DNA of 64,000 nt from Takakia lepidozioides (lineage: Eukaryota > Plantae > Bryophyta): assembly GCA_030704615.1 (NCBI GenBank), contig CM060732.1, positions 39,680,001 through 39,744,000 of the forward strand, read 5' to 3'. Below the pieces are notes generated by a model. That model did not search any database. It saw only the letters and a program-made list of their open reading frames with translations, and was not told where the DNA came from. This document shows positions 2,887 through 25,077 of this stretch, one piece after another (the first letter of the stretch is position 1; the number at the start of each line of letters is the position of its first letter). Both the position numbers and the translations under genes were made by a program.

Positions 2887-5800
2887 ATGGCAGCGTGTTC
2901 CGGCGTTATCCTGAGCGTGCATGCAGACTCCTTACCCAATGCCCTGTGTTCGCGTTTCGGTCATGCGAGACGCCTCAGATCATGCAGCAGATTAAGGGGC
3001 TGGGCTGTGAAGCTGAAATCAGCCTCCCCGTTCGCAATGCGCCAAGATCGGAGTCCCTTGCAAGTGGTGGCTATGGCGCCTCCGAAACCTTCAGGGGTGC
3101 AACTGAAATTAGGTAGTAACACGAAACACTTTGCGGTTTCGATTCTTGGAGCCCTGTGTTTGTATGCCCCGGCTTGTAATTGCATAATCCACCGTAGTCT
3201 GGCTAAGAAGCAAGAAAACCACACAGGATAGTCAGACAAGGGCTGTAATTTGTATATCTGGCACGTAGGCCAACGCTGGAGCATGGAACAGCGCTGGCAG
3301 GAGTTCTTTAAAGATCCGTCACAATGGTGGGACTACAGCGTTCACAAGGTGAGCTGTCTTCATCTAGTATGTGAAGGAGTCTGAGGGAGCTTGGATGACT
3401 CTGGTATTTTAAAATTGTGGATTGGATTGCACCCCTAGTTGGTGAGGGAAGGTATGATCTCGGTTTGTTCTGCAAAAACTGCTCTTACTGTCAGTATAGT
3501 ATGTTCCTCATTCTAAGCAGGGCATGAAAGTAGGTTCCGAACTTCTTTCCCTGGGTTTGTTCAGAAGGTTGATGGCTGTGGCTTGGTTAAACTGTGGCTG
3601 CTCAGCTGGTCCCTGGTGGTTTTCACAGACCAATCCAAAATCTCCGGACTACAGACATAAGCAGAGCAGACAAGAGGTCCTGTGGATTGAGGGTTGGTTC
3701 CATCCTCCTTGGGTGAAAGAAAAGCTAACTGCCATGGCACAAGGTCGAGCTGTGAAGATATCAGAGTGCGGTTCTGATTCTGGTGTGCATGATGGAGCTC
3801 CTTCAAAATTTGGAGATGATAGTGAGTATGACTCGCAGTGAGCCTAATTTGAGGGTAGCCTTTTCATGAGAAGCTTGTCTAGCCTCCGTAAGGGTTTATA
3901 CTTGTTTGTATTTTCCTCTCGTGTAACGTCAAATAGCCCTGTGTGACTTGCATGAATGTTTGTGAAAACTGCACTAGCACTGTTCCATAAAGGAACGTGT
4001 TGAAGTGTTGATGCTGTTGGAGTTGCAGGCACGAAGGTCAACCATGGAGCATGGAACAGCGCTGGCATGAATTTTTTAAAGATTCCTCAGGATGGTGGGA
4101 CAACCGCAATGGCAAGGTGTGGCTTTCTTCATGTATGATGTGAAGAAGTTTGTCATTCCTGCAGAAGTGGCTCTTCCTGTCAGAATCATAAGTTGTCCTC
4201 CAAAGCAAGCCATGTAAATACAGTGTCAAGGATTTTCCTATTTACAAGGTACTTGGGAGGGTTGGATTGGTCTTAGGAGCTTGTGTTTAAAACTATAGCT
4301 GTTCAGCTGCACTGTGGTATGTTTTACAGACCAATCCAAGATCACCGGACTATAGACATAAGCAGCAGACACATGAGGTCCTTTGGATTGAGGGTTGGTT
4401 GAATCCTCCTCAGGTGAAAGTAAAACTAGCTGCTTTCATGACACAAGGTCGAGGACTACGTGGTGAGGATACCTCCTTCTTCAACACATTTAGTCTTGTT
4501 CTGTCCTCCTATCAGATTCATTCAAAAATGGAAAACAGAGATGAGGAGAAGCTTTGGAAGGAGTATTTTTTGAAGCCCAGTCAATGGTGGGACAATGGAG
4601 GCAGAAAGGTGAATGTCTGTCATTTACAGAAGGAAGCAGACAACATTTGCATTGAAAAGCTCCCTTGCAAATTGTCATACTCCCTCTGCTCCCAACACAT
4701 CTTTTAAGTTTTGTGAGCAATTCAACTTAGTAACTAGTGTGTGGTAAATAGGTTTGGGGTTTTTGCTAGATACATTTTAGGTCTCAGCTTCTAGCAGCAA
4801 GGGAAGGATCTGTACAGTACTGTTGCCAAGGCAGGGATAGCTGAAGGAGGCGGGAATGAATTGTGGGTCCAGATCCATCCGAAAGGGCCAGATTTCAAGC
4901 ACAAGAGTACGGATGAGCCACTGTGGATTGATATCTACAAGAAACCTGCATGCATAGATGGTCAACTGGAAGCAACAGTGGCAGCACAGTTAATAAAATC
5001 AGGCAACTCCACCTTGACCACCTCTTCAGAAAGAGGACGAAGACAGGGAGGCCACAAGATCTCTTCTGGCACCTGTGGGCATGTGAGGACACTATGCGAG
5101 GCAGGACAACTGAAAGAGGCTCTGTGCAGTTTGAACCAAGGAGGCATTTCAGCAGATTCCACTACTTATGTCTGTCTTTTAAATAAGTGCATCAAGATGA
5201 AAGGCCTAGCAGTAGGAAAGCAGGTGCATGCCCACATTATCCAAAGTGGATTCAAGCCAAACATGTTTCTGTACAACACCCTTGTCAACATGTATGTCAA
5301 ATGTGGGAGCATAATGGATGCACGCCAAGTGTTCGACAAAATGCCTGAACGAGGTTTGATCACGTGGAACACATTGATGGCAGGATATGCCAAGCATGGG
5401 TGTGGTAGGAATGCCTTGGAGACATATGAGCAAATGATACAAGAAGGGGTGATGCCCAACCAGGTCACATTCATTTGCGTTCTCAAGGCGTGTGCCTGCC
5501 TGGCAGCCCTGGAAAAGGCCAAAGAGATCCATGCTGACATCATGAAAGCTGGAATTGTACCAAATATGAACCTGAGTACTACCCTTGTGGACATTTATGC
5601 CAAATGCGGGAGCATTGAAGACGCAAAAGGAGTGTTTGACAATATGGCTGAACGAGATGTGGTATCATGGAGTGCGATGATAGCAGGATATGCCCAGCAT
5701 GGATGCGGGATGGAGGCGTTGGAGATGTATGAGCAAATGATGCACGAAGGTGTGACACCCAACCAGGTCACATTCCTTTGCATTCTAAAAGCGTGTGCCA

Positions 5801-7746
5801 GCCTGGCAGCCCTGGCCAAGGGCAAAGCCGTCCATGCTGATATCATGAAAGCTGGAATAGTGTCGAATATTTTCTTAGACAATACCCTTGTGGATATGTA
5901 TGCCAAATGTGGGAGCATCAAGGATGCAAAGGGAGTGTTCAACAACATGGCTGAACGAGATGTGGTGTCATGGAGTGTGATGATCACAGGATATGTCCAG
6001 CATGGGTGCGGGATGGAGGCATTGGAGACCTATGAGCAAATGATGCGAGAAAGGGTGAAGCCGGACCAGGTCACATTTGTTTGTGTTTGCAATGCATGTG
6101 CGAGCTTGGCAGCCCTAGAAAAGGGCAAAGAGGTCCATTCTGACATCATGAAAGCTGGAATTGACCCAGATGTCATTCTGAACAATACCCTGGTGGACAT
6201 GTATGCCAAATGCGGGAGCATCAAGGATGCAAAGGGAGTGTTCGACAATATGGCTGAACGAGATGTGGTGTCCTGGAGTGCTATGATTGGAGGATATTCC
6301 CAGCACGGGTGTGGGATGGAGGCTTTGAGGACCTACGAGAAAATGATCCGGGAAGGGGTGAAGCCAGACCAGGTCACTTTCCTTTGCATTTGCAATGCCT
6401 GTGCAGGCGTGGCAGACCTGGAAAAGGGCAGAGTGGTTCATGCTGACATCATAAAAGCTGGAATTGTACCAGATGTCATTCTGAACAACACCCTTGTGGA
6501 CATGTATGCCAAATGCGGGAGCCTCAAGGATGCAAAGGGGCTGTTCGACAATATGGCAGAACGAAATGTGGTGTCATGGAATGCGATGATCACAGGATAT
6601 GCCCAGCATGGATGCGGAATGGATGCTTTGGAGACCTATGAGCAAATGATCCGGGAAGGGGTGAAGCCAGACCAGGTCACTTTCCTTTGCGTTTGCAATG
6701 CGTGTGCAGGGAGGGCAGCCCTGGAAAAGGGCAGAGGGGTCCATGCTGATATCGTGAAAGCTGGAATTGTACCAGATGTCATTCTGAACAACACCCTCGT
6801 GGACATGTACGCCAAATGTGGGAGCATTGAGGATGCACAGGGAGTGTTCAACAAAATGGCTGAACGAAATGTAGTGTCATGGAACACAATGATAGGAGGA
6901 TATGCCCAGCATGGATGCGGAATGGAGGGTTTGGAGACCTATGAGCAAATGATGGGCGAAGAGGTGAAGCCAGATCAGGTCACCTTCATTTGCGTTTGCA
7001 ATGCATGTGCGTGCCTGGCGGCCCTGGAAAAGGGCAGAGAGGTCCATGCTGACATCATGAAAGCTGGAATTGTACCAGATGTCATTCTTAACAATACCCT
7101 TGTGGACATGTATGCCAAATGTGGGAGCATTGATGATGCCAAGGGAGTGTTCAACAGTATGGCTGAACGAAATGTGGTGTCATGGAATGCCATGATTGCA
7201 GGATATGCCCAGCATGGTGGTCATAAGGACGCTATGCAACTATTTGAAGGAATGCAAAAGGAAGGCTTGAAGCCGAATGATATCACTTTTATATGTGTTC
7301 TCCAAGCATGTAGTCATGGGGGTCTAGTGGATGAAGGGAGATACTACTTTGATTCCCTGCATCGAGATCATGGCCTGACTCCTACAATGGAGCACTTTGG
7401 CTGCATGGTGGACCTCCTTGGCCGTGCAGGGCGATTAGATGAGGCTGAGGACTTCATCAACAAAATGCCGGTCCAACCAGATGCTGTGGTATGGAAGGCC
7501 TTGCTAGGTGCCTGCAGAAATTATGGGAATGTGGAGGTGGCAGAACGTGTGGCCAAATCTATTCTCAAGTGGGATCAACAGGACACCACAACTTATGAAT
7601 TGCTATCAATTATCTATGCTGCAGCTGGCAGGTGGGACGATACTGCAAAGGTGAGGAAAATGATGCAATTCAGAGGTGTCAGGAAGCAGCCAGGTCGCTG
7701 CTCCATTGACTTTGGTAAACGGGTCCACATATTTGGTGGTAGATGA
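2887..7746 (+). CDS. Plastid-targeted PLS-class PPR protein (E+/truncated DYW) with three N-terminal OSB-type PDF motifs; exons ~2887-3112, 3269-3348, 3629-3837, 4029-4116, 4330-4608, 4873-7746
   Basis: All joins are GT..AG and frame-compatible (phases 1,0,2,0,0; the third intron has an alternative phase-1 solution 3822-4036). Exon 1 MAACSGVILS...SPLQVVAMAPP is Ser/Arg/Ala-rich with a VVA-MA cleavage-like site. Three copies of W.EFF.DPS.WWD....K|.NP.SPD(Y/F)(R/K)HK....(V/P)LWI. Then L,S,(P-L-S)x6,P2,L2,S2,E1,E2 and a PG box before the stop. Confidence 0.85.
5350..7170 (+). repeat. Six highly similar 303-bp P-L-S PPR triplets
   Basis: 101-aa units ([14 protein letters not shown] / QVTF.C.CNACA / [16 protein letters not shown]) recur at about a 303-nt period. 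Confidence 0.9.
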
Positions 7747-8170
7747 CAACTTCTATCCACAAATTAGGAAATCCATGCTGAGCTGAGAAGATTGTCTGGG
7801 CACATGAAGGAGGTGGGGTATGTGCCTGACACACTTTTTTTTTGCATGATGTGGAGGAGGAGCAAAAGAAATTTCTCTTTGCCACCACATTCCCGCTCAA
7901 ACTGGGCGTGGGGTCAATGGCCACAAGGCTACGGCAAACAACGTCTTATGAGTACAATCTTTGCCACCACAGCAAGGTGGCCATTGCTTTTGGGCGGATG
8001 AGTACGGCACCAGGGACACCTATTTTGATTCATCAAGAACCTTTGAATGTGTGGTGACTGGCACACGGCCACCAAGTTCACCTCAAAGATTGTTCGGCGA
8101 GCAATTGTTGAACAGGATACCAGCCGCTTTCACCACTTTGAAGATGGGTTTGTTCTTGTGGGTATAGTGA
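7747..8170 (+). pseudogene. Disrupted DYW cytidine-deaminase domain of the + PPR gene
   Basis: Aligns to the paralog's DYW (GYVPDT, HDVEEEQK, HHS.K.AI.FG, CGD.H...[16 protein letters not shown]) but has several 1-nt frameshifts, an 82-bp insertion, HSEKLA changed to HSKVA (catalytic Glu lost) and no terminal DYW. Confidence 0.9.
7876..7971. mobile_element. 68-bp insertion (7890-7957) flanked by a 14-bp direct repeat (putative TSD)
   Basis: TCTTTGCCACCACA at 7876-7889 and 7958-7971; the paralog has one copy of the site and no insert. Confidence 0.7.
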
Positions 8171-9585
8171 ATTGATGTTGTGAGTGGCTTGCTTCATTTA
8201 TTAAAAGCATCCAGCTGCTTGGTTCATTCGCCAATGCCCTGGGAATGTCGACTATGACATACTGTTAAAGGCATTTCCTCCTCCCTGGCATAACAACGCA
8301 ACACGAGCTGATTATGGAGTCTACCCACCAGGAGGTGGAAACTAAACCCCGAGATTGCGCTTTGCACCCACATGATCAAAAGCCATCTGATTACAGGCAT
8401 CAGATCATGCTAGGAACTAAAATGTGTGTGCCTGCATTGCTGCTTGAGCTCCCAATTTGACCACAGATATGACACATGGCTCTCATTGGATCACATAATT
8501 GTATCTCATACAAGAGAAAGAAAGATACTGCAAACATTTTCCTTACCAACAGGAAGCTGGGCAGAGTCTCCTTTGTGGGAATGATCTTCACTCTACCTGG
8601 GAAAGGTATTTGTTATATGATCTGTAGTCATGCTTGGTTGGGTAGTTGTGCCTGGCCTGTGCATAACCAGGGTGATCCTGGGCGGAACACATCCCACCCT
8701 TAGAGTTGAGCATCACACCAAATCACAAGGCAAAGTGGTTCATGTCGTGACAATGTACATTGTCACAGCCAAAGGAGGAGGAGTCTACATCTCCCTCTCA
8801 TTATTCACACATCAATTAGTTTGGTGTAATTGTATTAATATTAATTGAACCAACATGATGGATCAAGAGATTCACCCAAAAGTTTTTGGGTCCAAATTTG
8901 AGATATTGGACAGTTACTGGAAGCAAGAGATTTAGAAAGATTTGCTTTACGTGTTGTGGATATTGGATATTTAGGAGATCTTGCCGCTTGTTTGAGATTA
9001 GTACCTCAAGTACTTATTGAGAACACTGGGAATCATGCCAGCAATTGACACCTGCTTCGGGACACTTGCAGTATCGTCGATTGTTGCATGAAACTATGTA
9101 CAATTGTGCATACTGGACAATTGTTTCATACATGCACCCAAATCTGGTCTCGAACTGTAGACAATTGGACTGTCCCCCAAACTTGAACTCCAACATGCAC
9201 AAACCAATGTTATATTGTGAGGGAGTCATGCACATCCAATTCATGCTGCATCAATCAAGAACAGAAAACCCAAATACCCTTACGATCACTATGTGAAGTT
9301 TCAAGCCACCATGGGATTGGATCTGGGTGGTCTACCACCCACACCAGATTAGCATAGCACTCTGATTTCCTTCCACTATCACCAGAGTCAGTCGAAATCC
9401 CCCCTTTACTCATTACCTGCTCCAGTCAACTGCAAGTATGGGCTGACTTCCCACCTATGCTGGGTGGACCCCACTACCATTTCCTGTAGTGCCCTCAACA
9501 GTACATGATGGTCAATATTCTCTGGAAATGGTGGATGAACTGAAGAGCTACACAGATCAATGAATGAAGCAAGACACTCGCATCT

Positions 9586-9873
9586 TTCCAGAAAAAAATG
9601 GTTCACCAGTAATCCCAGCAAGAACAAACCCCATCTTCAAAGTGGTGAAACCGGTTAGCATCACGTAGAACAATTGCGCGGCCAACAATCTTTGAGATGA
9701 ACTTGGTGGAGGTGTGGCAGTCACCACAATGTTCCAGAAAAAATTGTTTCACCAGTAATCCCCGCAAGAACAAACCCCATCTTCAAAGTGGTGAAAGCGG
9801 TTAGCATCCCGTACAACAATTGCGCGGCCAACAATCTTTGAGATGAACTTGGTGGAGGTGTGGCAGTCACCAC
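9586..9873 (-). repeat. ~146-bp tandem duplication of the DYW C-terminus and stop codon
   Basis: 9586-9728 is a near-identical copy of 9732-9873; the distal copy reads [41 protein letters not shown], out of frame and 20 nt past the stop. Confidence 0.9.
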
Positions 9874-12800
9874 ACACCCGAAGATTCTTGATGAGCCGGA
9901 GAGTCCTCCTAGGGGCCGTGCTGATCAGCCCAAAACCAATGGCCAGCTTCTCACTGTGGTGGCAAAGAGAAAATTCCTTTTGCTCCTCCCCCACATCATG
10001 CAATACAAAGCGTGTGTCAGGCACATACCCTGCCTCCTTCATCTGTCCAGACAATCTTCTCAGCTCAACATGGATTTCCTTAATTTTGGGATGCAATTTG
10101 TCATCTACAACGAAGGTGTGCACCCTGTTGCCAACCTCAATGCAGCAGTGACCTGGCTCCTTTCTAGCCCCTCTGACCTTCATCATTTTCCTCACCTTTG
10201 CACTATCATCCCACCTGCCAGCTGCGGCATAGATGTTTGATAGCAACACATAAGTCGCAGCATCCTGTTCATCCCACTTGAGAATAGATGTTGCTGCACG
10301 TTCAGCCATCTCCACATTGCCATGGATTCTGCAGGCACCAAGCAAGGCCTTCCACACCACAGCATCTGGTTTGATTGGCATTTTATTAATGAGGTCCTCT
10401 GCCTCATCCAATTGCCCTGCACGTCCAAGAAGGTCCACAATGCAGCCAAAGTGCTTTACTGTCGGAGTGACACCATGATCTTGACTCAGGGAATCAAAGT
10501 AGCGTCTTCCTTCATCCAGTAGGCCAACATGGCTGCACGCAGAGAGAATACATATAAAGGTGATACTGTCCGGCTTCAAGCCTTCCATTTGCATTCGTTC
10601 AAATAGTTGCAGGGCCTCCCTATGACAACCATGCTGGGCATATCCTGCGATCATCACGTTCCATGACACCACATCTCGTTCAGCCATACTATCGAACACT
10701 CCCTTCGCATCTTCAATGCTCCCACATTTGGCATACATGTCCACCAGGGCAGTGTTCAGAATGACATCTGGAACAATTCCAGCTTTGACGATGTCACCAT
10801 GGACCTCTTTGGCCTTATCCAGAGCTGCCATGCCTGCACACGCACTGCAAACACAAACAAACGTGATGTGGTCTGGCTTCACCCCTTCCTGCATCATTTG
10901 CTCATAGGTCTCCAAAGCCTCCATCCCGCGCCCCTGCTGTGCATATCCTGTGATCATCACGCTCCACGACACCACATCTTGTTCAGCCATATTGTCAAAC
11001 ACTCCCTTCGCATCTTCAATGCTCCCACATTTGGCATACATGTCCACCAGGGTATTATTCAAACTAACATCTGGTACAATTCCAGCTTTGACGATGTCAC
11101 CATGGACCTCTTTGGCCTTTTCCAGGGCTGCCAGGCTCGCACACGCATTGCAAATGCAAACGAACGTGACCTGGTTGGGCTTCACCCCTTCCTGCATCAT
11201 TTGCTCATAGGTCTCCAAAGCCTCCATCCCACACCCATGCTGGGCATATCCTGCAATCATTGCGTTCCACGACACCACATCTCGTTCAACCATATTGTCG
11301 AACACTCCCATCGCATCTTCGATGCTCCCACATTTGGCATACATGCTCATCAGAGCAGTGCTCAGAACGACATCTGGTACAATTCCAGCTTTGACAATGT
11401 CACCATGGACCTCTTTGGCCTTATCCAGCGCTGCCAGGCTTGCACACGCATTGCAAATGCAAACAAACGTGATGTGGTCGGGCTTCACCCCTTCCCCCAT
11501 CATTTGCTCATAGGTCTCCAAAGCCTCCATCCCGCACCCCTGCTGTGCATATCCTGCAATCATCGCGCTCCATGACACCACATCTCGTTCAGACATATTG
11601 TCAAACACTCCCTTTGCATCCTTGATGCTCCCACATTGGGCATACATGTTCATCAGAGCAGTGTTCAGAACAACATCTGGTACAATTCCAGCTTTGATGA
11701 TGTCACCATGGACCTCTTTGGCCTTCTCTGGTGCTGCCAAACTCGCACACGCATTGCAAACGGAAATAAATGTGATGTGGCTGGGCTTCACTCCTTCCCG
11801 CATCATTTGCTCATAGGTTTCCAAAGCCTCCATCCCACGCCCCTGCTGTGCATATCCTGCGATCATCGCGTTCCACGACACCACATCTCGTTCCGCCATA
11901 CTGTCGACGAACACTCCCTTTGCATCTTCAATGCTCCGGCATTTGGCATACATGTCCACCAGGGCAGTGTTCAGAATGACATCTGGTACAATTCCAGCTT
12001 TGACGATGTCACCATGGACCTCTTTGGCCTTTTCCAGGACTGCCAGGCTCGCACACGCATTGCAAATGCAAACAAATGTGATGCGGTTGGGCTTCACCCC
12101 TTCCCGCATCATTTGCTCATAGGTCTCCAAAGCCTCCATCCCGCACCCCTGCTGTGCATATCCTGTGATCATCGCGTTCCACGACACTACATTTCGTTCA
12201 GCCATATTGTCGAACACTCCCTTTGCATCTTCAATGCTCCGGCATTTGGCATACATGTCCACCAGGGCAGTGTTCAGAATGACATCTGGTACAATTCCAG
12301 CTTTGATGATGTCACCATGGATCTCTTTGGCCTTTTCCAGGGCTGCCAGGCTCGCACACGCATTGCAAACGGAAACAAACGTGATGTGGTTGGGCTTCAC
12401 CCCTTCCCGCATCATTTGCTCATATGTCTCCAAAGCACTACTACCACACCCATGCTTGGTAAATCCTGCCATCATTATGTTCCAAGTGATCAAACCTCGT
12501 TGAGGCATTCTGTCGAACACTTGGTGAGCATCCACGATGCTCCCACATTTAACATACATGTTGACAAGGGTATTTTGTAGAAAAACGTTTGGCTTGAATC
12601 CACTGTGGATAATGTGGGCGTGCACCTGCTTTCCAGCTTCCAGGCCTTTCAACTTGATGCACTTATGCAAGAGACAGACATAAGTATCTGAATCTGCTGA
12701 AATGCCTACTTGGTTTAAAGTCTGTAGAGCCTCTTTCAGTCGCCCTGCCTCACATAGCATCCTCACATGCCCAGAAGTGCGAGAAGAGGCATTGTGGACT

Positions 12801-12973
12801 CCCTCTCTTGGTCCTCTTTTGGAAGCTGTGGTCATGGTCGAGGTGCCTGATTTGATCAACTGTGCTGCTGCCGCTGCTGCTTCCAGTTGACCATCTACCC
12901 ATGCAGGTTTCTTGTAGCTATCGCCCCACAGGAAATCATAGGTAATCTTGTGCTTGAAATCTCTTGGATGAAT
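9749..12973 (-). CDS. PLS-class DYW PPR protein (DYW:PG type), C-to-U organellar RNA editing factor; main exon
   Basis: Uninterrupted frame: degenerate PDF half (IHPR--DFKHK...LW), L,S,(PLS)x6,P2,L2,S2,E1,E2, PG box, [25 protein letters not shown]. Acceptor gtccag at 12974 is shared with the paralog; first in-frame ATG is at 12835. Confidence 0.95.
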
Positions 12974-13231
12974 CTGGACCCGCACTCTATCCCTGCTCCT
13001 TCAGCTATCCCTGCCTCTGCACAAATCATGCATGCATCCTTGCCTTGCTGCTAGCAGCTGACAATGACAGCCTAGATTTGTTCTATCAAGCACCCCAACC
13101 CTACTTATCACATACTAGTTCCTATGCTGAATTGCTCCCAAGAGTTAAAAAATGTGCTGGGCAGAGAGAGGATGACAATTTCCAACAAAGCTTTTGCTGT
13201 CTGCTTCTCTTTGTATCTAACAGGCATTCAC

Positions 13232-14205
13232 CTTTTTGCCTCGGTAGTCCCACCATTGACCGGGATCGGAAAAATATTCATTCCAAAGCTTCTCCTCGTC
13301 TCTGCTATCTATTTTTGGATACTTTCCTGTTGGCACATTGGCGGTAACATGTCAAAATCACTCCAAACCCCCATAGATCTACCCGACGAGCTTACCCGCA
13401 GATTTCAACATGAAAAATCAGGGACGACTATGATAAGAGGGCAAAACAGGCTGAAATAGGTTCAGGAAAGGTGGCCTCACCACATTGTCCTCGACCTTGT
13501 GTCATGATCCATGAAAGATTCAACCGACCATCAACCCAAAAGGACCTCTTATGTGTGCTGCTTGTGTGTGTAGTTAGGTGATCTCGGATTGGTATGTGAG
13601 AACCACCACGGTGCAGCTGAGCAGCCATAGATTGAAACACGGCCCCCTAAAACCAAGCTGACCCTCCCAAGTACCTTGTACACCCCAGGAAAAATACCAA
13701 ATCATGATACTAACAGGAAGAGCCCACATTTGCAGGATGGACAATTTTCTTCGCATCTTCTTCGCATCGTACATTAAGAAAGCCACACCTTGCGATTGCG
13801 GTTGTCCCCTCATTGTGAAGGATCTTTAAAAATCTCATGTCAGCGCTGCTCCATGCTTCACGGTAGACCTTGGTGCCCGAAAACCCGACAGCATCAATAT
13901 TTCGACAAGTTCCTTTACGGAGGGGTGCTAATGAGCTTTCAACAACATTCATGCAGGTCACTTTGGGCTCCATTGGACTCTACACAACGAGGAGCATGCG
14001 AACATGTCCAAAACTTCCACGGATGCTAAACCAGCTTATGTCTGTAGCGTCTGGAGATCTTGGAGTGGTATGAAAGCCTGCGCACATGGGCCCTTCGATC
14101 AGCCGTGACCACACACAGGGCCCTGATCCGCTTGGGTGAACGCTGCAGGATTTTTTCACCTTGCGCTGCGGTCGAAGAGCTCTTTCTCTCTTGCTCCACG
14201 GCAGG
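13232..14205 (-). pseudogene. Upstream PDF-motif exons of the - PPR gene, mostly decayed
   Basis: 13232-13326 is an open exon (DEEKLWNEYFSDPGQWWDYRGKK|gt). 13481-13593 has acceptor AG changed to AT plus TAA and a frameshift. 13789-13868 has three TGG-to-TGA stops. ~14034-14200 holds remnants (TTPRSPD..YRHK) of the first PDF. Confidence 0.75.
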
Positions 14206-14629: not shown

Positions 14630-17391
14630 GATGTAACCCTGTAAGACTTTACTTGCAACATGTACAATGGGGTGGGGGTTGGGTGGGGGTTGGGGTGGGG
14701 GGGGGGGGGAAAGGAACAAGAAACAAGAGAAGAAACAAAAAGCTATAATAAGCTACTCAACCAAAGAAGAAAATAAAGCTATAATATGCTATTCAACCAA
14801 CAAAAGCAATACCGTCCATGGACAACAGATTAGGCGATAATTATTTCAAAATAAAAGTGCCTAACGAATTCTGTGAATTTTTCAGATTTAAACCTAATTT
14901 CGGGAAATTATGGGTCCAAAGTGCCTAATGCCCAAAATTTCCACAAAAAACTTGCAAGCCTTTCTCATGTTGTTTGTAATAACAAAAATCAATACAAATA
15001 TATGCGTGCGGAAATAACTTCCTACAAATCGCAATCTATTTGCGAGAGCTCCATGTAACTTCGAAAGGCCCTTGCATGGACTCGACAATGTCATCATACT
15101 CATCATCCTCGCTAATCATCATCATCTCTCCATCTACTTCCTCCACCACATTGAGATCGAGGATATCCTCATTTTCAATGTGCAGATTTGCAAGACATCT
15201 TTAGGGCATTTTTAGGGTTTGAAGGAAATGAAAGGTAGCTGGAGCTTGGAAGGGCCCGCATTGGGTGTCTATTTTTGTAATTTTTTTCTTAAGAAAATAG
15301 ATGTTTTCTCTTATCATGTGCCTAATTCTAAAAAATTGTAGCATGCAATGCCTAATTTGAGAATATGTTTTAATTTTTTGATTGATTGATTTTGGATTTA
15401 GGCGCAAAAATGCCTAGACTGTTGTCAAGGTACGATAGTAAGCTACTCAACTAGAACGACCCTCCCAGCCAACAACTCGGAAGAGATCAAGCAAGGAGAT
15501 AAGCAAAGTGTCAGGCATAGGCGAAAGATGAGATGACGGAGCTAGCCACATCAGCCCGATGCAAAATAGATATGGCTTGTGCTCTCTGCAAAGCAACTGA
15601 AACACGTTGTCGATAGTAGGCAACAAGGATGGAGGCATGCGGGATGCCAATGGACCCGCTCTTGGCTGCATGATGTGTACATGTCCGCAGGAAATCGTCA
15701 AAGTGCCTACGCAATGAGCCAAATATCTCGACCGCCAGCGGAATAAATCTGTCAGTGGGGTGACGATCGATGTAGTCGCGCTCCTTGGCCTAAGCTGCTA
15801 CAGTGGCTGTCGTGCCTAGTGTGGTAGCCGCGCGAGATAGCAGATCCACTCGAGTAGGGTCGGCGAGAACGACATCCGCTACGGTACGCAAACCATCTCT
15901 AGAGATGATGATGTCAACACAACGGCGTGTAGAATGGAACGTGAGCGTGGGTTGTAGATGAGGTTGCTCACGCAGTACATGATACCCTGCCTCCCGAGCA
16001 ATAGATGTCACCGCATCGCAAACCACATCATAAGACGCAGTGCGCTCGTCATCACATGGGCAGCGGAGGGCGGATGGCAAGGTCATCGATGGGCTGACGA
16101 CAGACGCACCACTGAAGACCCAATGACGAAGGATGAGGCAAACCGAGTCGAAGGCGGAGTGCAGTTTTGAAAATAGGGGATGAGAGGCAAAAATGTGTGA
16201 TGGTGGGTTGTATTGCCAACCATGCCCCTGCTCCGGGTTTTGCATATGATAGATTAGAAGTCGAGCCTGATGCAACTCAGAAGCAACACTTGAGAGCATG
16301 CAGGAAAAGGAATGACGATGCACGCGCTTGGAAATGGACTCATGAAGATGGTCGAGGCCTTGAGCAACCAGCTGCTCAAATGGTGGTAGACATGCTCACG
16401 CTGGTGCCGGAAGAAGATCTCGTGCAGAGCGGAGATGTTGCTGGAAGGGTAAAATGCCACTGTCGACATGCGCAACGGCGTCCATAAGGATGGAACGATG
16501 GTCACAGAGAAATCGTGAAGCAAGGGCTGGCACAGCCAACGCCCAATTGCCGAGGAAGGCTGACGGGGCTGTAGTCACAATGGACAAAAGACCCACACCA
16601 CCGGAAGAGATGGGCAGGGTGGCTTGCTGTCGTGGCAAAAGTCCCTGAGCACCCTCCAGAGCTCATGGTGATCCTAACAATCTCCCGAAAATAGTCATCA
16701 TGGTAGTATCAAACCCAGATAAGAGGTGTAGGAAATCTGGGCTGGGTGGAACAGTGCGCAAGAGATATGAGGGATGCTGAAGGAAACATTTGGTCAAGAT
16801 TCCATATGCTACCTGCACATCTCTTAGCCTAGGAAGGAGATCGGCGTGAGTGGCATCCTGGTGGAGTGCATCTTCCAAGAAAGACGTTGTGAACTGGGTG
16901 GCCAAAAGGGACTCCCAAGATTCTGATGCCATTGGGCGGAGCAATGAAGTGAGCAGGGGGGACAAAATCTGCAGGGAGACCGGACGGAGACTTGCACACC
17001 GCGCATTTGCGAGGTTGCACTGAAAGGCCCACGGCACAGAGTTGGGTGACAAAATGATGGTAAACTAGAAGGATTTGTGAGGCAGGCCTACGATGTGCGT
17101 GTCGTTTGCCACCAACGGAAAAAGACAAGATGAGTGTACTTGCGCAGAAGGGTGCGGACGTGAGCCATGGCAAACAAAGGTCCTCCTAAAGGGTCGCCTT
17201 GGCGGGTCCCAACCTCGGACTGAATGATGGAGCACTCACCTAGGCGAGAATGATGACTGTAGTAGAGGGGAGTTGTGGATGCATAGAATAATCGAACAAA
17301 CGGAATGAGCTGGTGGAAGTCTCCCCCAGCTGAACAGAGCTCCTGAAAGATAACCGCCCATGACACAGTATTGAAAGCATTGGTGACGTCG
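14630..17391 (-). mobile_element. 5'-truncated CRE-like non-LTR retrotransposon (RT + Zn-knuckle remnant + restriction-like endonuclease), degenerate
   Basis: Minus-strand motifs DVTNAFNTVS, GTRQGDPLGGPLF, GIRILGVPFG, LPISSGGVGL, then RRCVDIIISRDGLRTVADV..ADP and FIPLAVEIFG (RLE); no APE; many frameshifts. The 3' boundary is approximate. Confidence 0.8.
14811..15436. mobile_element. Non-autonomous DNA transposon remnant (hAT-like) inserted in the CRE 3' region
   Basis: Imperfect 25-bp terminal inverted repeats (ACCGTCCATGGACAACAGATTAGGC vs revcomp ATCGTACCTTGACAACAGTCTAGGC, 19/25), internal GCCTAA/TTAGGC motifs and an acidic coding remnant on the minus strand; no clear TSD. Confidence 0.45.
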
Positions 17392-17459
17392 AGGGTTGCT
17401 TTCTAGTGAGAATATCCCGGTTAGTGTATCAGAAAGTGGATCTATTGTCTTCAAGCTAA

Positions 17460-17462
<3 letters not shown>

Positions 17463-17540
<78 letters not shown>
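17463..17540. repeat. (GA)39 microsatellite
   Basis: Direct read. Confidence 0.99.
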
Positions 17541-17544
<4 letters not shown>

Positions 17545-17968
17545 CCGTTATTATGTTCAAAAGGTGAGAGACAATTTTTTCCTTGACTGACACTATACAT
17601 ATCCATGAAATGTTCAGCGAGAATGTTATGGATACAGTCATCCATTTTGCAGCTGTGGCTTAGAGAGAGTATGGCTTAGCCCTTTTGGTGAGTTTATCAG
17701 TTCTGTATCATCCTAGTATGTTCGCTAGTCCTTGCCATAGTTCCATTCTATCACTCTGCTAAGCATATGGGTTTGTCACAGGAGATTGGAATGTTGACCT
17801 CTCTGGTTTGGCATTGCACAGCACTAATCCTTGAAATGAGATACATGACAACTAATCATGATGCATCAGTGGTCCCTCATCACTAGTGTCTGCCCAAAAT
17901 TAATCTAATATAGATTTAGTTCGGCATAAGTAGAAATTTCTTACAGAGTCGTTGAGGTTGTAAGCTTG

Positions 17969-19059
17969 TGTTAGAGGACTGTAGGGGACTTAGACACTTA
18001 TACGGGATCTGTAGGGTACCCTTAATTTTTGCACAGACTGAGACAAACAGGAACCTTAGGGGTGACAGCAGCGCACTGTAGAGGGGGGTTACATAGCCCA
18101 CACAGCCGACACAGCAGTCACAGCCCACACAGCCCACACAGCCAACACAGCCCGTCACAGTCGTCACAACCCACACAGCCACACAGCCCGTCACAGTCGT
18201 CACAGCCCACACAGCCGACACAGCCGTCACAGCCCACACAGCCACACACAGCCCGTCACAGTCGTCACAGCCCACACAGCCAACACAGCCCGTCACAGTC
18301 GTCACAGCCCACACAGCCCACACAGCCCGTCACAGTCGTCACAGCAGACACAGCCCACACAGCCCAGTCACAGCCCGGCACAGCCACACAGCCAGTCACA
18401 ACCGACACAGCCAAACACAGCCAGTCACCGCTTGACACAGCTGTCACGATAATAGGAACGAAGAGTAGGACAGGGAACGACTGTGGGGAACAACACCAGT
18501 GAAGGGAACATGTTAGTTCACATACGACGGTTAGAGAGGGAAACGGTTAGAACCGCGGATAGGAGGATAAAGGGAAGAACGGGGAATAGGAAGAGATCAT
18601 TATTCGGGGAGGACTTCGGAGACAGGCGGGAGCGGAGATCGGAGAGCACGATGAAGGAGAAAAGAGGATTAGTAGATGCTTGTCATATGCAAAGCTAGAG
18701 TGATATTGTAGAGCAGATAGAGACATAATGGCTTCGGCCTGATACCTGATAAATCATAATCTGATACTTATACGATACAATCACACTGTGTAGAGAGATC
18801 TGAGTGAAGCTGTGGATTGAATGGAGGAGTTAAGGAAACCGATAAATTGATGAAGCAAACTGATACTTAATTATCAATGGTAAGGTAGCTAAGATGAATG
18901 CGGAAAAGGAAACAAATAGGAAACACCCCCATGATACACTAGCTGTAGGTCATGACTGATTGTTCTGCGCGGGCTGAGTACTTAGAGATTTCCAACTCTT
19001 CTATCTTGGAGTTTCCGCCTCGGATAGCGAAGGGATGGGTGAGTAAAAGCCGCGCGACA
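17969..19059 (+). repeat. 5' LTR of copy 1 with internal (CACAGC/GTCACAG)-based tandem array ~18090-18450
   Basis: Begins TGTTAGAGG, ends CGCGACA immediately before the PBS; homologous to 25078-26176 and 37436-38459 (revcomp). Confidence 0.93.
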
Positions 19060-19061
19060 TT

Positions 19062-19079
19062 TGGCGACCATACTGGGGA
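19062..19079 (+). promoter_or_regulatory. Primer binding site (probably tRNA-Arg)
   Basis: TGGCGACCATACTGGGGA 2 nt after the LTR, identical in all three copies; complementary to a ...GGTCG-CCA tRNA 3' end. The tRNA identity is inferred from memory of plant tRNA-Arg(UCG). Confidence 0.75.
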
Positions 19080-22000
19080 CCTGGGACATGAACAACCAGA
19101 TGTGACAGGCATCTGGTGGGATCATGGTGGTTGGACCATTAAAGAATTTGAAGTGAATCAAATTCCCTGTGGAACGAAGGAGAAAGATTGTCCAAACAAT
19201 TCTTTCAAAGGTTCTTGGAATTGCCAGACGGATGTAAAGAAAATATTCTTAAACGAGTGCATGATGCTGATCCAGAATGGGGTCTGGAGAAGGAGTGATA
19301 AAGATTTATCAGGTAGCCTGTAGAGGAAGAGCACGTTGGTTACCAACATTAGTTTATGTGATAGCGTTGCTATCCATTAAACGAGTAGAGTTTGAAGGTT
19401 GGAAGAAAGAAAGGTGAATGTTTATACTCATATGCATGAAGAGCTTGTACTGGTAAAGAATTGGATTCCAAAGGATATTTTGTGGATCAAACTCACACCA
19501 AGAACAGCTTTTCAGACTTGTTTGCCATATGGTTATATGGTAACGGAGACTTCAAGTATAGCCAAGGGTGCATTGAAGCTTGAAAGAATCCAGGCATATA
19601 CGAGCATATACGAGAGATATAGAGAGAGAGTTTTGGTTATTGCCACATTAAAAGAAATGAAAGACATGGGACATGAGTGATGAAAGAGAAGCTAGACGAC
19701 AAAGATATTCATCAAAAAGAGAAAGCTATCTGAAAGCTAATTATCCATATCTTTGGGAGAGAGGAATAGACATAGGGGAATCATCTGGACCTCTCACACC
19801 ATCAAGATCAAAAAGTGCATCACCTATACCGGAAGAACTAGAGTTGGATGCCACTCCTTCTGTTTCTTTGCAAGAAAGATTAAGGGAATTGGTACAGGAA
19901 GAAGATCAATCACGAGGTGAAAGATCTGAGGTACATCCTTGGATAAAAGACTTGACAGAAATCTTTGATAAGAGTTGGCATGGAACACCAAAAGCAGGAA
20001 CTCCAGTTTCTGAAGCAGAAGATGAAGAAGGAGATGAGGATGTGGCAGAGCCAACGGAGAGTACAGACTCTCCAACACCATTACAGTTGAGTTACATGAG
20101 TGAAGAAGAAACCCAAGGGCAGAACTTGGAGGATGAAAACAGAGAGAAGAAATTGAAGAGGAAGAATATGAAGAAGTAGACCCAACAGCTGAGGTTGAGA
20201 CTACAACCAGGACATCCCAACCCGTTGGACCTGGATCAAGTGGAGCACTTGGATCACAGGCCAACGAAGGTGTCGGCTCAGGGGGATCAGGCGGGCTGCC
20301 TGGATCTGGCTCTGGGGGGACAGGGAGTGTGGGAAGTAGTGCAACTGAAGCTGGGAATACTGTGAATATCGTGGGGCCAGAAGCAGGGAGTGCTCAAGGG
20401 CCACCACTGGTGGAAGATCCACCACAAAACAACAGGTCCAGAAGGACCAGCACCAGCAAGGGTGCCAGCACCTGTCAGTGGGCAGAAGGTAGGGCACAGA
20501 TGGCGTTACAACCAACACGGGCAAAACCACCCTTTCCAATATATTCAGGAAAAGGGGATCCCGATGTACACATTAGCCAATTTGAGCACATGTGTATAGT
20601 GAACAATGAGAATGGCGATGATGCCAAGATGAGACTGTTTCCTTGTTCACTTATCAAGAAAGCAAGTGAATGGTATGCAAGATTCCCTGATAATCATTTC
20701 CTAACCTGGAATGGCTTGAATACAGCATTTCGAAATAGGTTCAGGACAAGTAAAACTGAGGATGAAGTGTATGGAAGTTTACAACAGCTGAAGCAGAAGA
20801 AGCATGAAACTGTTGAAGAGTATATGGAGAAGATGGAATGATGATGAAAAAGCTGGCTGCAGTACCAGCACCCGGTTTACAGAAGACTTGGTTTGTGAGT
20901 GGACTAAGACCAGAGTTGCAGAAGAAAGTGGATATGTTACCCCATAATACAGTGGAGGAGGCATTTGAAACTGCAAACAGAATTGAGCAATTGGGAATGC
21001 TCAGGAGAGAAAAAAAGGAAGATGAGGACTCTGAAGATGAGTCAGATGAAGAAGAAGAGCAAGAACTAAAAAGAAGAGTAAGAGAAAGGAAAAGTTGAAG
21101 AAGGATAACTATGAGAAAAGATTGGAAGAAATCTTGAAGAAGTATGCCACAGAGGCTGCAACACATTGGAGGAAGGGTGTATGGTGTGCAAAGTGCCAGA
21201 ATGAAGGCCATACCACTACAGAATGCCACATGAAGGAGAAACACTGTACTATCTGTAAAATGGATAACCATTCTACTGAGAATTGTTACTACAACAGAAG
21301 GACAGCTGCAAGAGAACCTAGGCAAGTGAGGGTGCATCAGGTGCAGCCCCAGCCAAGAAGAAGCAATGATCAGGACCACTATGGTAGGTCTGGTGGCTAT
21401 AACAATGGCATGGAAGGGAGAGGTAATTCAAGAGGGAATTACCAAGGAAATTCCAGAGGCAACTATCAGGGTAATCCAAGGGGGAATTACCAGCCGGGAA
21501 TCAGGATTATAGAAATAATCCAAGACCAGACCAAGGGCGAGGACCCAATGGTGAAGAGCTATGTTACTATTGTAATCAGCCAGGACATCGCAAGGCAGCC
21601 TGTTCATTCTGGATAAGACACCAGAATGAGATGAGAGCTCCTGTGAAATGAGGGCCCAGTGGTGGCAGCTCACATGGTTAGGCCATGTGTTGTACCAGAA
21701 GTAAGTACAATGATAGTAACAAGAAGTAAAGCCAAACTAATACCTCCAGTAGAAGAGGAAGAAGATGAGACTGGAAGTGGCAATGATATGCCTGAAGATG
21801 AAGAGACTTGGAAGGATGAGAAGGAACTGCACAAGGAAGTGGCAGATACTATAAGGGAAATGCAAAAGAGTACGGATATTCCTGTGGCAGATTCCTCTGA
21901 TTCGGATGGAGAAAAAAGGGGAGTGAGGAAGAAAGGAAAAAAGAAGATGCAGACATGCAAAGTAATGAAGAGACTTTGGCTGAAGTAATATGTCAGACCA

Positions 22001-24577
22001 AAGCAGAAATTACCATTGGACAGCTATTAGCTGTGGCACCTTATTGTAGGCACAGGCTGTATCAGGCAATCAATCGAATTGCCCAAGAGACAGGAAACAC
22101 AGACCTGAACAGCAAGGTGACCAGTTATAATGTGAAGCCGGAAGGGCGAGAACCAGTCATGGACTTTGATGATTCTATGCCAGTAATCCAATTGAGAATT
22201 GGAAGCACAGAACTAACTGATGTACTGATAGATGGTGGTTCTGGAGTAAATATCATGACAGACCAATTAAGGAAGAAGCTTGGTCTAAGTAACATGAAAC
22301 CAGCCCCATTTACAGTAACAATGGCAGATCAAAGAAGTGTACAGCCATTGGGATTAATAAGAGGAGTTAAGATACAGATACAGAAAATGATCTTTATGAT
22401 CACAGTAACTGTATTAAAAATGGATGAAGTCATGGAGGCTTACTCCTTATTATTGGGACGTCCGTGGCTGAAACAGGCAGGGTATTCCATGACTGGAATT
22501 CTCAGTTACTAACTGTGCATAATGGGATGCACGAGATACAAATTACCACAAAGAAATCTAGTAGATTACCTGCTACAAGAAGACCTCGAGGAGTCAGAGA
22601 GTATGACTGGAAGGGAGGACTGGATGAGGAGCAGGAAGCTACCCTATTTGCTGCACACCCAGAATGGGAGCAGGTTGCAGAGATGCGGCTGGAAAGCCTA
22701 AGTTGTTTGAGAGGTATCTGCTGTGGTGTAGTGACAGCAACACCCAACTGAAGAAGAAACCAGCATTTACCCATCACATTTCTATGAAGAAAGAGAAGGA
22801 GAAATAGAAATCCTAGAAGAACCAGCCACTGTGAGCTTACAGGATGAAGTGGTGACCGGTTGGACAATCACAGCTGATGAGCAGGTGAGAGAAGTAAATG
22901 TGGGAACTCAGAGAACCGAGGATGGTGAAAGTAGGAGCTGATTTGGAGCCGGAATTCTTCGAAGAAGCAAAAAGCTTGTTCATCAAATACAGAGATGTAT
23001 TTGCTTGGAGCTATGAGGATCTAAAAGGGATACCACCTGAAGTCTGTCAGCATAAAATTGAACTGGAACCAGGGTCAGTACCAATCAAGCAGGCGAGGTA
23101 TAGAATGATCCCAACTACGCACAGAAGGTTGGAGAAAGAGATAAAGAAGTTGGCTGAGGCTAAGTTTATATACCCAATAGAGTATACAACTTGGTTGTCA
23201 CCCATTGTTATAGTTCCCAAGAAGAATGGCAAACTAAGAGTATGTGTGAACTATAAGAAGCTGAATGCTTGTACGAAGAAAGATCCTTTCCCTTTGCCAT
23301 TCACAGAAGCAGTATTAGACACTGTGGCAGGCCATGAGATGTACTCATTCATGGATGGCTTCAGTGGTTATAATCAAGTGCAAGTGGCAGAAGAAGACCA
23401 AGGGAAAACAGCTTTCATCACAGACTGGGGGGCTTATGCATACAAAGTCATGCCCTTTGGCTTTGTAATGCACCAGCGACCTTTCAGAGAGTGATAAGTG
23501 AATCTTTTCAAGAGTATCTGGATGATTTCATGCAGGTGTTTTTGGATGATTTCAGTGTGTACAGCTCTAAGAATGAGCACTTGCATAAATTGGAGTTATG
23601 CCTGGCCAGATGCAGGATGAGAGGTCTGGGCTTGAACCCAGAGAAGTGTACTTTCTGTGTGAACTCAGGGGTGCTTCTGGGACACATTGTGTGTAAGAAG
23701 GGACTCCTTGTGGATCCCAGGAAGACAGAGTCCATTAAAGCCTCTCCACCACCAGTGAATGTTAAGAGTTTAAGGAGATTCCTTGGGCAAACCAGTTATT
23801 ACAGAAGATTTGTCAAAAGGTATGCACAAATAGCAGCACCATTGAGCAAGCTTCTGAAGAAAGATGCAGTGTTTGCATGGACAGCTGAATGTCAACAGGC
23901 GTTTGAGGAACTTACACTGTCAGTAACAACTACACCTGTGCTGATTAACCCTCACTGGCATGTAGTATTTCATGTTCACTGCGATGCATCAGGAGAAGCG
24001 TTGGGAGCGGTGTTAGCCCAGAATGTTACAGGGAATATAGATTCACCTGTGTACTATGCTAGCTGTTGATGAACAGTGCTGAGAGGAACTATAGCACAAC
24101 GGAAAGAGAAGCATTGGCAATGATCTATGCAGTGAAGAAATTCAGGCATTACCTATTGGGAAGAAAGTTTATGTTTTATGTGGATCACCAGGCTCTGATA
24201 TATCTGGTGAACAAACCTTTGATAAGTGGAAGGATAGCGAGGTGGTTAATAATCTTGCATGAGTTTGAGTTCGAGGTTATTACAAGCCTGGCCGTTTGCA
24301 TCTTGTGGCAGATCATTTGTCACGACTAACAACAGGAGAGGCCGCCACAGGAGTGGACGATCAGTTACCTGATGCGAGTTTATTTGTAATGGAGGTGCAA
24401 GGAAGTGCAGATGAATGGTTAGATTGGCAGTGGCAATCAGATACTACCTTGTTCATGGTCAGTGCCCACCTAGTTATGGTAAGGAGGCAGAGGAAGAGAA
24501 TTGCTATCAAAGCTTTACCTTATTACTATCGGTAGGAAGCAGAAGTATAAGTTAGGACCTGATGGAGTACTAAAAAC

Positions 24578-25077
24578 NNNNNNNNNNNNNNNNNNNNNNN
24601 NNNNNNNNNNNNNNNNNNNNNNNNNNNNNNNNNNNNNNNNNNNNNNNNNNNNNNNNNNNNNNNNNNNNNNNNNNNNNNNNNNNNNNNNNNNNNNNNNNNN
24701 NNNNNNNNNNNNNNNNNNNNNNNNNNNNNNNNNNNNNNNNNNNNNNNNNNNNNNNNNNNNNNNNNNNNNNNNNNNNNNNNNNNNNNNNNNNNNNNNNNNN
24801 NNNNNNNNNNNNNNNNNNNNNNNNNNNNNNNNNNNNNNNNNNNNNNNNNNNNNNNNNNNNNNNNNNNNNNNNNNNNNNNNNNNNNNNNNNNNNNNNNNNN
24901 NNNNNNNNNNNNNNNNNNNNNNNNNNNNNNNNNNNNNNNNNNNNNNNNNNNNNNNNNNNNNNNNNNNNNNNNNNNNNNNNNNNNNNNNNNNNNNNNNNNN
25001 NNNNNNNNNNNNNNNNNNNNNNNNNNNNNNNNNNNNNNNNNNNNNNNNNNNNNNNNNNNNNNNNNNNNNNNNNNNNN
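24578..25077. other. Assembly gap (500 N)
   Basis: Direct read; the round size suggests a scaffolding placeholder. Confidence 1.

Follow-up and report, generated by a model that had tools for sequence, protein, structure and literature searches.

PLS-class PPR-E-DYW proteins, such as PPR56 of Physcomitrium and OTP86 of Arabidopsis, are organellar C-to-U editors in which a PLS array is followed by E1/E2 and by a DYW domain that carries HxE, CxDCH and, at its very end, DYW. In seed plants, the DYW domain is supplied in trans to E/E+-type factors (PMC5295000, PMC7611903). For mosses and lycophytes, which are reported to lack the non-PPR cofactors that seed plants use in editing, a simpler complex of a single PPR-DYW protein has been suggested (PMC5295000). 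The PDF motif is found in OSB proteins and is sufficient for single-stranded DNA (ssDNA) binding in AtOSB1 (PMC6963530). Our literature search found no paper combining 'DYW' and 'PDF motif'. Here we describe a convergent pair of paralogous genes in which these modules meet. The pair spans positions 2887-14205 of the window, which is the whole stretch of 64,000 nucleotides analysed from Takakia lepidozioides (contig CM060732.1) and consists of nuclear DNA of a seed-free land plant. Its PPR genes find their best matches in proteins of Diphasiastrum complanatum, with 54-57% identity. The gene on the plus strand (plus copy) has kept its PDF motifs and lost its DYW deaminase, and the gene on the minus strand (minus copy) has kept the deaminase and lost most of its PDF motifs. 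This complementary pattern is probably the outcome of two module losses of common kinds that occurred independently in the diverging paralogues of a birth-and-death family.

Both copies resemble the PLS-class PPR-E-DYW editors in having a PLS array followed by E1/E2, and the minus copy also in its DYW domain, where HxE, CxDCH and the terminal DYW are all present. They differ from these editors by N-terminal OSB-type PDF motifs on small split exons, by PLS triplets that are 83-89% alike at the nucleotide level and by an atypical PG box. The plus protein is similar to the E/E+ factors that use a trans DYW domain (CRR4 with DYW1, E+ proteins with DYW2), since it carries PLS-E1-E2 and the first deaminase-fold strands but no catalytic part. 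Unlike in the seed-plant E/E+ factors, its truncation is recent and lineage-specific, the dead remnant is still visible, and the plant is seed-free. The PDF signature of the plus copy is repeated as in the OSB proteins, which carry it one to three times, whereas here the PDF motifs are N-terminal, the PPR array lies behind them, there is no OB-fold, and nucleic-acid binding is putative. With OSB proteins, the plus protein has one module in common, without belonging to the OSB family. Duplication-degeneration-complementation (DDC) is a subfunctionalisation model for duplicate genes. A DDC pair likewise has both duplicates constrained, with degenerative loss in a different module of each. The present pair differs from it because the RNA-specificity core itself has diverged, so that one ancestral function would not be jointly rebuilt according to the PPR-code prediction, and because either loss often occurs in the family on its own.

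The initial annotation had described the genes as an inverted paralogous pair. This was borne out by a nucleotide comparison, in which 3871-8165 of the plus strand matches 14037-9614 of the minus strand tail-to-tail, with ~83% identity over a 3.4-kb core. The two proteins align colinearly with three gaps, all in-frame, and 23 PPR-like motifs were parsed in each, as expected from the equal repeat number noted earlier. In the plus copy, the following features were found.

2887-3112, plus strand: exon 1, with the ATG and a 75-residue basic Ser/Arg-rich leader (candidate organelle transit peptide); GT donor after 3112
3269-3348, plus strand: exon 2, first half of PDF1 (W..FF..P.QWWD); AG/GT borders, phase consistent
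3629-3821, plus strand: exon 3, second half of PDF1 (NPKSPDYRHK..LWIEGW), then a linker
4037-4116, plus strand: exon 4, first half of PDF2
4330-4608, plus strand: exon 5, second half of PDF2, a linker and first half of PDF3 in a single exon
4873-7746, plus strand: exon 6, second half of PDF3, a linker, 23 PPR-like motifs (PLS triplets), E1/E2 and PG box; stop codon at 7744-7746
7747-8165, plus strand: dead DYW deaminase remnant with at least six 1-bp indels, an 82-bp insertion, the Glu codon gone, a stop codon and a Cys-to-Trp change

The gene model of the plus copy comprises six exons with GT-AG at all borders, consistent phases and 1243 codons in total. We handled this spliced model exon by exon, and the searches were done per exon. 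The leader contains 12 Arg/Lys, 2 Asp and no Glu. An OSB-type PDF motif has about 50 residues, with W..FF..P.QWWD, 11 residues of spacing and P-D-F/Y-K/R-H-K ... LW, and in this gene an intron cuts each motif between the WWD half and the PDF/Y-K/R-HK half. For comparison with relatives, the three-PDF region of the Diphasiastrum protein P0100 was used as query, which gave 190 proteins; the best 120 were tallied, and 7 of these 120, in which a regular expression found no PDF signature, were left out. Once spliced, all three PDF motifs of the plus copy conform to the OSB-type pattern. The spacing between WWD and DF/DY is 11 in all three, as in 121 of the 128 motifs of relatives, and all three carry the Pro that is present in 127/128 motifs. 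This agreement supports the splice junctions, and it matches the earlier description of clean PDF exons and a clean PPR array.

Exon 5 matched the PDF region of P0100 (BLASTP E = 1e-15) and, with four repeat matches, the OSB3 protein P0205 (BLASTP E = 2e-4). The PDF region of P0100 itself matched P0205 with a HMMER E-value of 1.8e-18. In exon 3, the likeness to P0100 extends past the PDF motif. Pfam gave no domain for exons 1-5, and hence no match to an OB-fold family. The PPR and E motifs of the plus copy were recognised with PPR_2 at E = 1e-128 and E_motif at E = 1.3e-14. When the first 110 residues encoded by exon 6 were used for a word search of the protein collection, which does not include the proteins of the window itself, nothing was found at E <= 0.001; the linker of this exon is lineage-specific.

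The open reading frame of the plus copy ends 12 residues past the PG box, and the deaminase behind it has decayed in many places. The 1-bp indels lie near 7731, 7765, 7834, 7871, 8022 and 8145. At 7890-7968, a net gain of 79 bp results from the 82-bp insertion, which includes a 13-bp direct duplication, minus a 3-bp deletion. The 3-bp deletion takes out the catalytic Glu codon (HHS-KV against HHSEKL in the intact form), a TGA stop stands at the LRV position, TGC>TGG changes CGDCH to CGDWH, and the DYW end is missing. The remnant scores 14.8 bits with Pfam, under the cut-off of 24 bits. The frameshifts, the insertion and the missing catalytic Glu that had been reported for this domain are therefore all present, and the Glu was lost through deletion of its codon. 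The insertion (window 7887-7968) consists of ~69 bp plus the 13-bp direct duplication of its target (CTTTGCCACCACA) and looks like the footprint of a target-site duplication or of replication slippage.

The minus copy has the opposite state, with an intact back end and a decayed front. Its features are as follows.

12985-9749, minus strand: long open reading frame of 1078 codons, with an aberrant second half of PDF3, a linker, 23 PPR-like motifs, E1/E2 and DYW
10030-9752, minus strand: intact DYW deaminase domain (PF14432, 142 bits against a cut-off of 24, E = 5e-42, residues 986-1078)
9603-9737, minus strand: tandem duplicate of the DYW coding end, the last 126 bp (CGDCH to DYW and stop), after the stop codon; 96.8% nucleotide identity
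12973-12880, minus strand: second half of PDF3 (PDF3b), with a 6-bp in-frame deletion (IHPR--DFKHK)
13321-13232, minus strand: first half of PDF3 (PDF3a), open, donor kept, good match to the family consensus
13593-13478, minus strand: second half of PDF2 (PDF2b), dead; acceptor mutated AG>AT, in addition a TAA stop, one inserted base and ~17-21 bp deleted
13863-13789, minus strand: first half of PDF2 (PDF2a), dead, with three Trp codons changed from TGG to TGA
14078-14034, minus strand: remnant of the second half of PDF1 (PDF1b); acceptor mutated AG>AT, two bases inserted, remainder deleted

The long frame had been described as a perfect 3.2-kb PPR-DYW frame, and we found it open over all its 1078 codons, with HSE, CGDCH and the terminal GDYW present. 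The exon homologous to exon 6 of the plus copy begins at 12973 and has retained its AG acceptor. Pfam recognised PPR_2 (E = 3e-130) and E_motif (E = 2e-19). The tandem duplicate of the DYW end has a stop codon of its own. The plus copy has a single DYW end, and its 3' flank matches the flank behind the second repeat of the minus copy. The tandem repeat is much younger than the gene duplication.

The front of the minus copy was reported to contain PDF1 and PDF2 exons with stop codons and dead acceptors. This holds for PDF2a, PDF2b and PDF1b. The remnant of PDF1b is significant, as its score in local alignment to PDF1b and PDF2b of the plus copy was reached in 0/500 shuffles. The claim fails for the first half of PDF1, where the supposed remnant was at chance level (score reached in 30-60 of 500 shuffles) and was rejected. 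The two genes share their exon structure with respect to PDF2, PDF3 and PDF1b; for the leader exon and the first half of PDF1, no significant counterpart was found. PDF3 was said to have lost 'GP'. The 6-bp in-frame deletion in PDF3b confirms this; the deleted motif lacks the near-invariant Pro and has a spacing of 9 instead of 11. PDF3a, however, is open, close to the family consensus and free of indels over its 90 bp, with no in-frame ATG upstream within the exon. None of the PDF motifs of the minus copy conforms to the OSB-type pattern. In PDF2a, three of four Trp codons became TGA by an identical G>A change, and the remaining one became GGG. PDF1b and PDF2b share the acceptor change CAG|ACC to CAT|ACC (in the region of 14071-14072 and at 13594-13595), which could be a coincidence or the result of conversion between the modules after the first mutation. 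Most lesions of the pair are substitutions or large indels and so cannot be put down to sequencing errors at homopolymers.

While these modules decayed, the long frames of both copies stayed open. Indels between the copies amount to 30-42 events/kb in the introns and 26/kb in the DYW remnant of the plus copy, and the exon-6 alignment of ~2.9 kb contains only three, all in-frame, without any frameshift. Neutral simulations predicted 6-10 stop codons and 30-50 frameshifts per frame, and the probability of no stop codon was <=0.003 even at 5% divergence per lineage. Between the copies, the PPR arrays have a pairwise ratio of nonsynonymous to synonymous divergence (dN/dS) of 0.29, and the E1/E2 regions one of 0.21. 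Given no frameshift against 30-50 expected and a dN/dS of ~0.3, both long frames were kept by selection. Decay confined to one module per copy, with the long frames constrained meanwhile, is supported by these sequence comparisons.

The predicted RNA targets of the two copies have diverged. We read the PPR code at the fifth and the last residue of each P and S motif. The code differs between the copies in 11 of 15 P/S motifs (14/30 residues against a background of 24%, binomial P = 0.006), and the S motifs are mostly N-D or N-N in the plus copy and T-D or T-N in the minus copy. Because of these 11 motifs, the copies should bind different organellar RNA sites according to the code, and a partition of one ancestral function does not fit. 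The repeats themselves point to concerted evolution (homogenisation) or to independent amplification of the triplets. Each PLS triplet measures 303 bp, and triplets of the same gene are 85-92% identical in the minus copy (10600-12600) and 77-88% in the plus copy (5270-7220), which equals or exceeds the similarity of triplets at matching positions in the two genes. Gene-specific residues recur in every triplet (for example, LNTAL versus LNNTL). Owing to this homogenisation, equal repeat number does not mean one-to-one orthologous repeats.

The relatives show that each kind of loss is common in the family. All of them are annotated gene models, taken from the proteomes of lycophytes, mosses and liverworts, and the following counts therefore contain some noise from overlooked N-terminal exons and from ends that were cut short.

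One PDF motif: intact HxE..CxDCH in 45 proteins, DYW signature absent in 49
Two PDF motifs: intact HxE..CxDCH in 1, DYW signature absent in 12
Three PDF motifs: intact HxE..CxDCH in 1 (P0100), DYW signature absent in 5

Intact HxE..CxDCH was thus found in 47/113 PDF-bearing relatives. The mutual exclusion of PDF motifs and an active DYW domain, which had been suggested from the pair, is contradicted in substance by these 47 proteins, which keep both. We built a tree of 96 rows on the non-repetitive P2-E2 region. The two genes of the window are sisters in it with 99% SH-aLRT support. The pair lies outside or adjoining a Diphasiastrum clade of 67 proteins, and moss and liverwort proteins are further out. 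P0100, with three PDF motifs and an intact DYW domain, belongs to the sister clade of the pair. On this tree, at least 17 changes of DYW state are needed, indicating that loss or truncation of DYW is frequent in the family. Five PDF-bearing, DYW-less proteins of D. complanatum (P0013, P0023, P0032, P0126 and P0132) have a near-identical end point in the E2/PG region with similar residues (...QLD). This shared end suggests an established truncated subfamily, as annotation truncation would scatter the ends. Another match, P0062, is a PPR-DYW protein of 1011 residues that is 45% identical to the minus protein and carries the NCBI label Balamuthia mandrillaris (an amoeba).

Taken together, we propose the following history. 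The ancestor would have been a PLS-class PPR editing factor in which a leader and three PDF motifs of the OSB type preceded the PLS array, with E1/E2 and a DYW cytidine deaminase behind it. The same ancestral architecture had been proposed before, and it is upheld by the PDF1b and PDF2 remnants of the minus copy, by the DYW remnant of the plus copy and by P0100. An old inverted duplication, now ~17% diverged in nucleotides, has left two paralogues, each with its PPR-E part under purifying selection. Their specificity residues have diverged, and each copy has independently shed a different accessory module. The plus copy presumably lost the deaminase early and would now encode an E+-like protein of leader, three PDF motifs, PLS array and E motifs that ends just past the PG box. 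If this protein still supports editing, it would have to take the DYW domain from another protein, like the E-type factors of seed plants; otherwise, it would act as an RNA binder. The minus copy has kept the deaminase and lost PDF1, PDF2 and its original first exon, with PDF3 departing from two near-invariant features. The gene anatomy, the lesions, the constraint on the two frames, the divergence of the code and the counts in the family are shown by the sequences, and the function of either protein, the trans-acting DYW domain and the targeting are what we infer. The fit between the two losses is most likely coincidental, both being of kinds that occur often in this large birth-and-death family.

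Several observations weigh against this history. Neither blastn nor tblastn found a homologue of the leader exon of the plus copy near the minus gene, and the minus gene has no in-frame ATG ahead of codon 51. With neither a recognisable first exon or leader nor such an ATG, the minus gene may be dead at present. The PG box is atypical in both copies (PGRCSID at 7690-7720 in the plus copy, PGHCCIE at 10090-10120 in the minus copy), where the conserved box is PG-x-S/T-W-I-E and 110/116 relatives have S/T-W, and this raises doubt on the catalytic competence even of the DYW domain of the minus copy, as judged from the motif. As both copies are atypical, the Trp was probably lost before or soon after the duplication. 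The measure of selection is also affected. The synonymous divergence dS of 0.43 exceeds the intron divergence K of 0.19-0.27, so the constraint is weaker than 0.29 suggests; with the introns as neutral proxy, dN/K is ~0.5-0.6. PLS triplets are 88.8% alike within the minus gene against 84.0% between positional counterparts, and because the minus triplets are homogenised in this way, positional codon comparisons are not strictly orthologous. Gene conversion from other family members could help to keep the frames open. Finally, in the raw counts, DYW is kept in 2 of the 19 multi-PDF relatives against 45 of the 94 single-PDF relatives (Fisher p = 0.002).

The most serious alternative is that one or both genes are recently dead pseudogenes. 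The minus copy would have lost its first exon and leader, perhaps by a rearrangement or repeat insertion upstream of 14.2 kb, and its frame would be open simply for lack of time to decay, or thanks to repair by conversion from other PPR genes. The missing leader exon and start codon, the aberrant PDF3 and PG box, and the conversion-like processes visible in the homogenised minus triplets all agree with it. On the other hand, PDF2 of the minus copy decayed at intron-like rates while 3.2 kb downstream remained without stop codons or frameshifts, so the frame was protected long after the front modules had died. Two candidate in-frame starts are also available. One is a derived ATG inside the long frame, at 12835. 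The other lies at 13411, is followed by a strong GT donor after 13396 and could be spliced in-frame to the open PDF3a exon (start 13326). Moreover, the relative-rate test on the P2-E2 region gave 16 unique changes in the plus copy and 9 in the minus copy (p = 0.23), which is not a significant difference. On balance, we regard recent death of one or both genes as somewhat unlikely. Domain-level subfunctionalisation, as the initial annotation had put it, would make the genes an obligate pair in which the DYW domain of the minus protein acts in trans on the site of the plus protein. The losses are indeed structurally complementary, both long frames are constrained, and the plus protein stops just past the PG box like the E+ factors that pair with DYW donors (PMC7611903, PMC5295000). 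The two proteins, however, are not predicted to share a site, as 11/15 P/S motifs differ. The known trans donors are short DYW proteins, and the minus protein is a full reader of 23 motifs without an identifiable leader. DYW-less PDF-PPR proteins are also common in Diphasiastrum, so the loss of DYW needs no such partner. An obligate pair is very unlikely for these reasons.

It had also been suggested that selection acts against a PDF-type ssDNA tether and an active deaminase on one polypeptide because of the risk of damage to organelle DNA. The pair in the window has the predicted pattern, and the scarcity of DYW among the multi-PDF relatives described above is in the same direction. Nevertheless, many PDF-bearing PPR proteins retain the intact catalytic signature, and P0100 combines three PDF motifs with DYW. 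The association between PDF number and DYW comes down to 5 phylogenetically independent contrasts only (sign test p ~0.5); the DYW-less multi-PDF proteins are mostly from one clade, several with a similar C-terminal end, and their scarcity of DYW may reflect the expansion of this one clade. We consider such antagonism highly improbable as the cause of the losses in this pair. Two independent losses of common kinds thus remain our preferred explanation.

The region upstream of the minus gene, at 15790-24100, has a strong AT/GC skew and many open reading frames of 150-210 residues on both strands. Three of these frames between 15790 and 17173 gave no Pfam family. This stretch may be a decayed repeat element that took the place of the original 5' end of the minus gene. 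Further on, the window contains an assembly gap of 500 N at 24578-25077.

In a wider setting, the multi-PDF PPR-DYW editors of lycophyte-grade plants might repeatedly shed the deaminase and persist under selection as PDF-PLS-E+ proteins. We hold this general trend to be clearly unlikely, although its consequences would be considerable. DYW would then be supplied in trans outside seed plants, or these proteins would have a PDF-dependent role other than editing. There would be a real functional antagonism or redundancy between the dosage of PDF motifs and a cis deaminase, and the pair described here would be a young, still legible case of that transition.

The value added by the pair is evolutionary detail rather than a new kind of system. 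It is a clean natural experiment, in which, after a single duplication, the deaminase of one copy decayed at close to neutral rates and the PDF motifs of the other copy also decayed, with both arrays open. It also speaks against the attractive but unsupported notion that one protein cannot combine a single-strand tether with a deaminase. E+-like, DYW-less factors arise outside seed plants, and a member of this family can be retained without its PDF modules or without a cis DYW domain.

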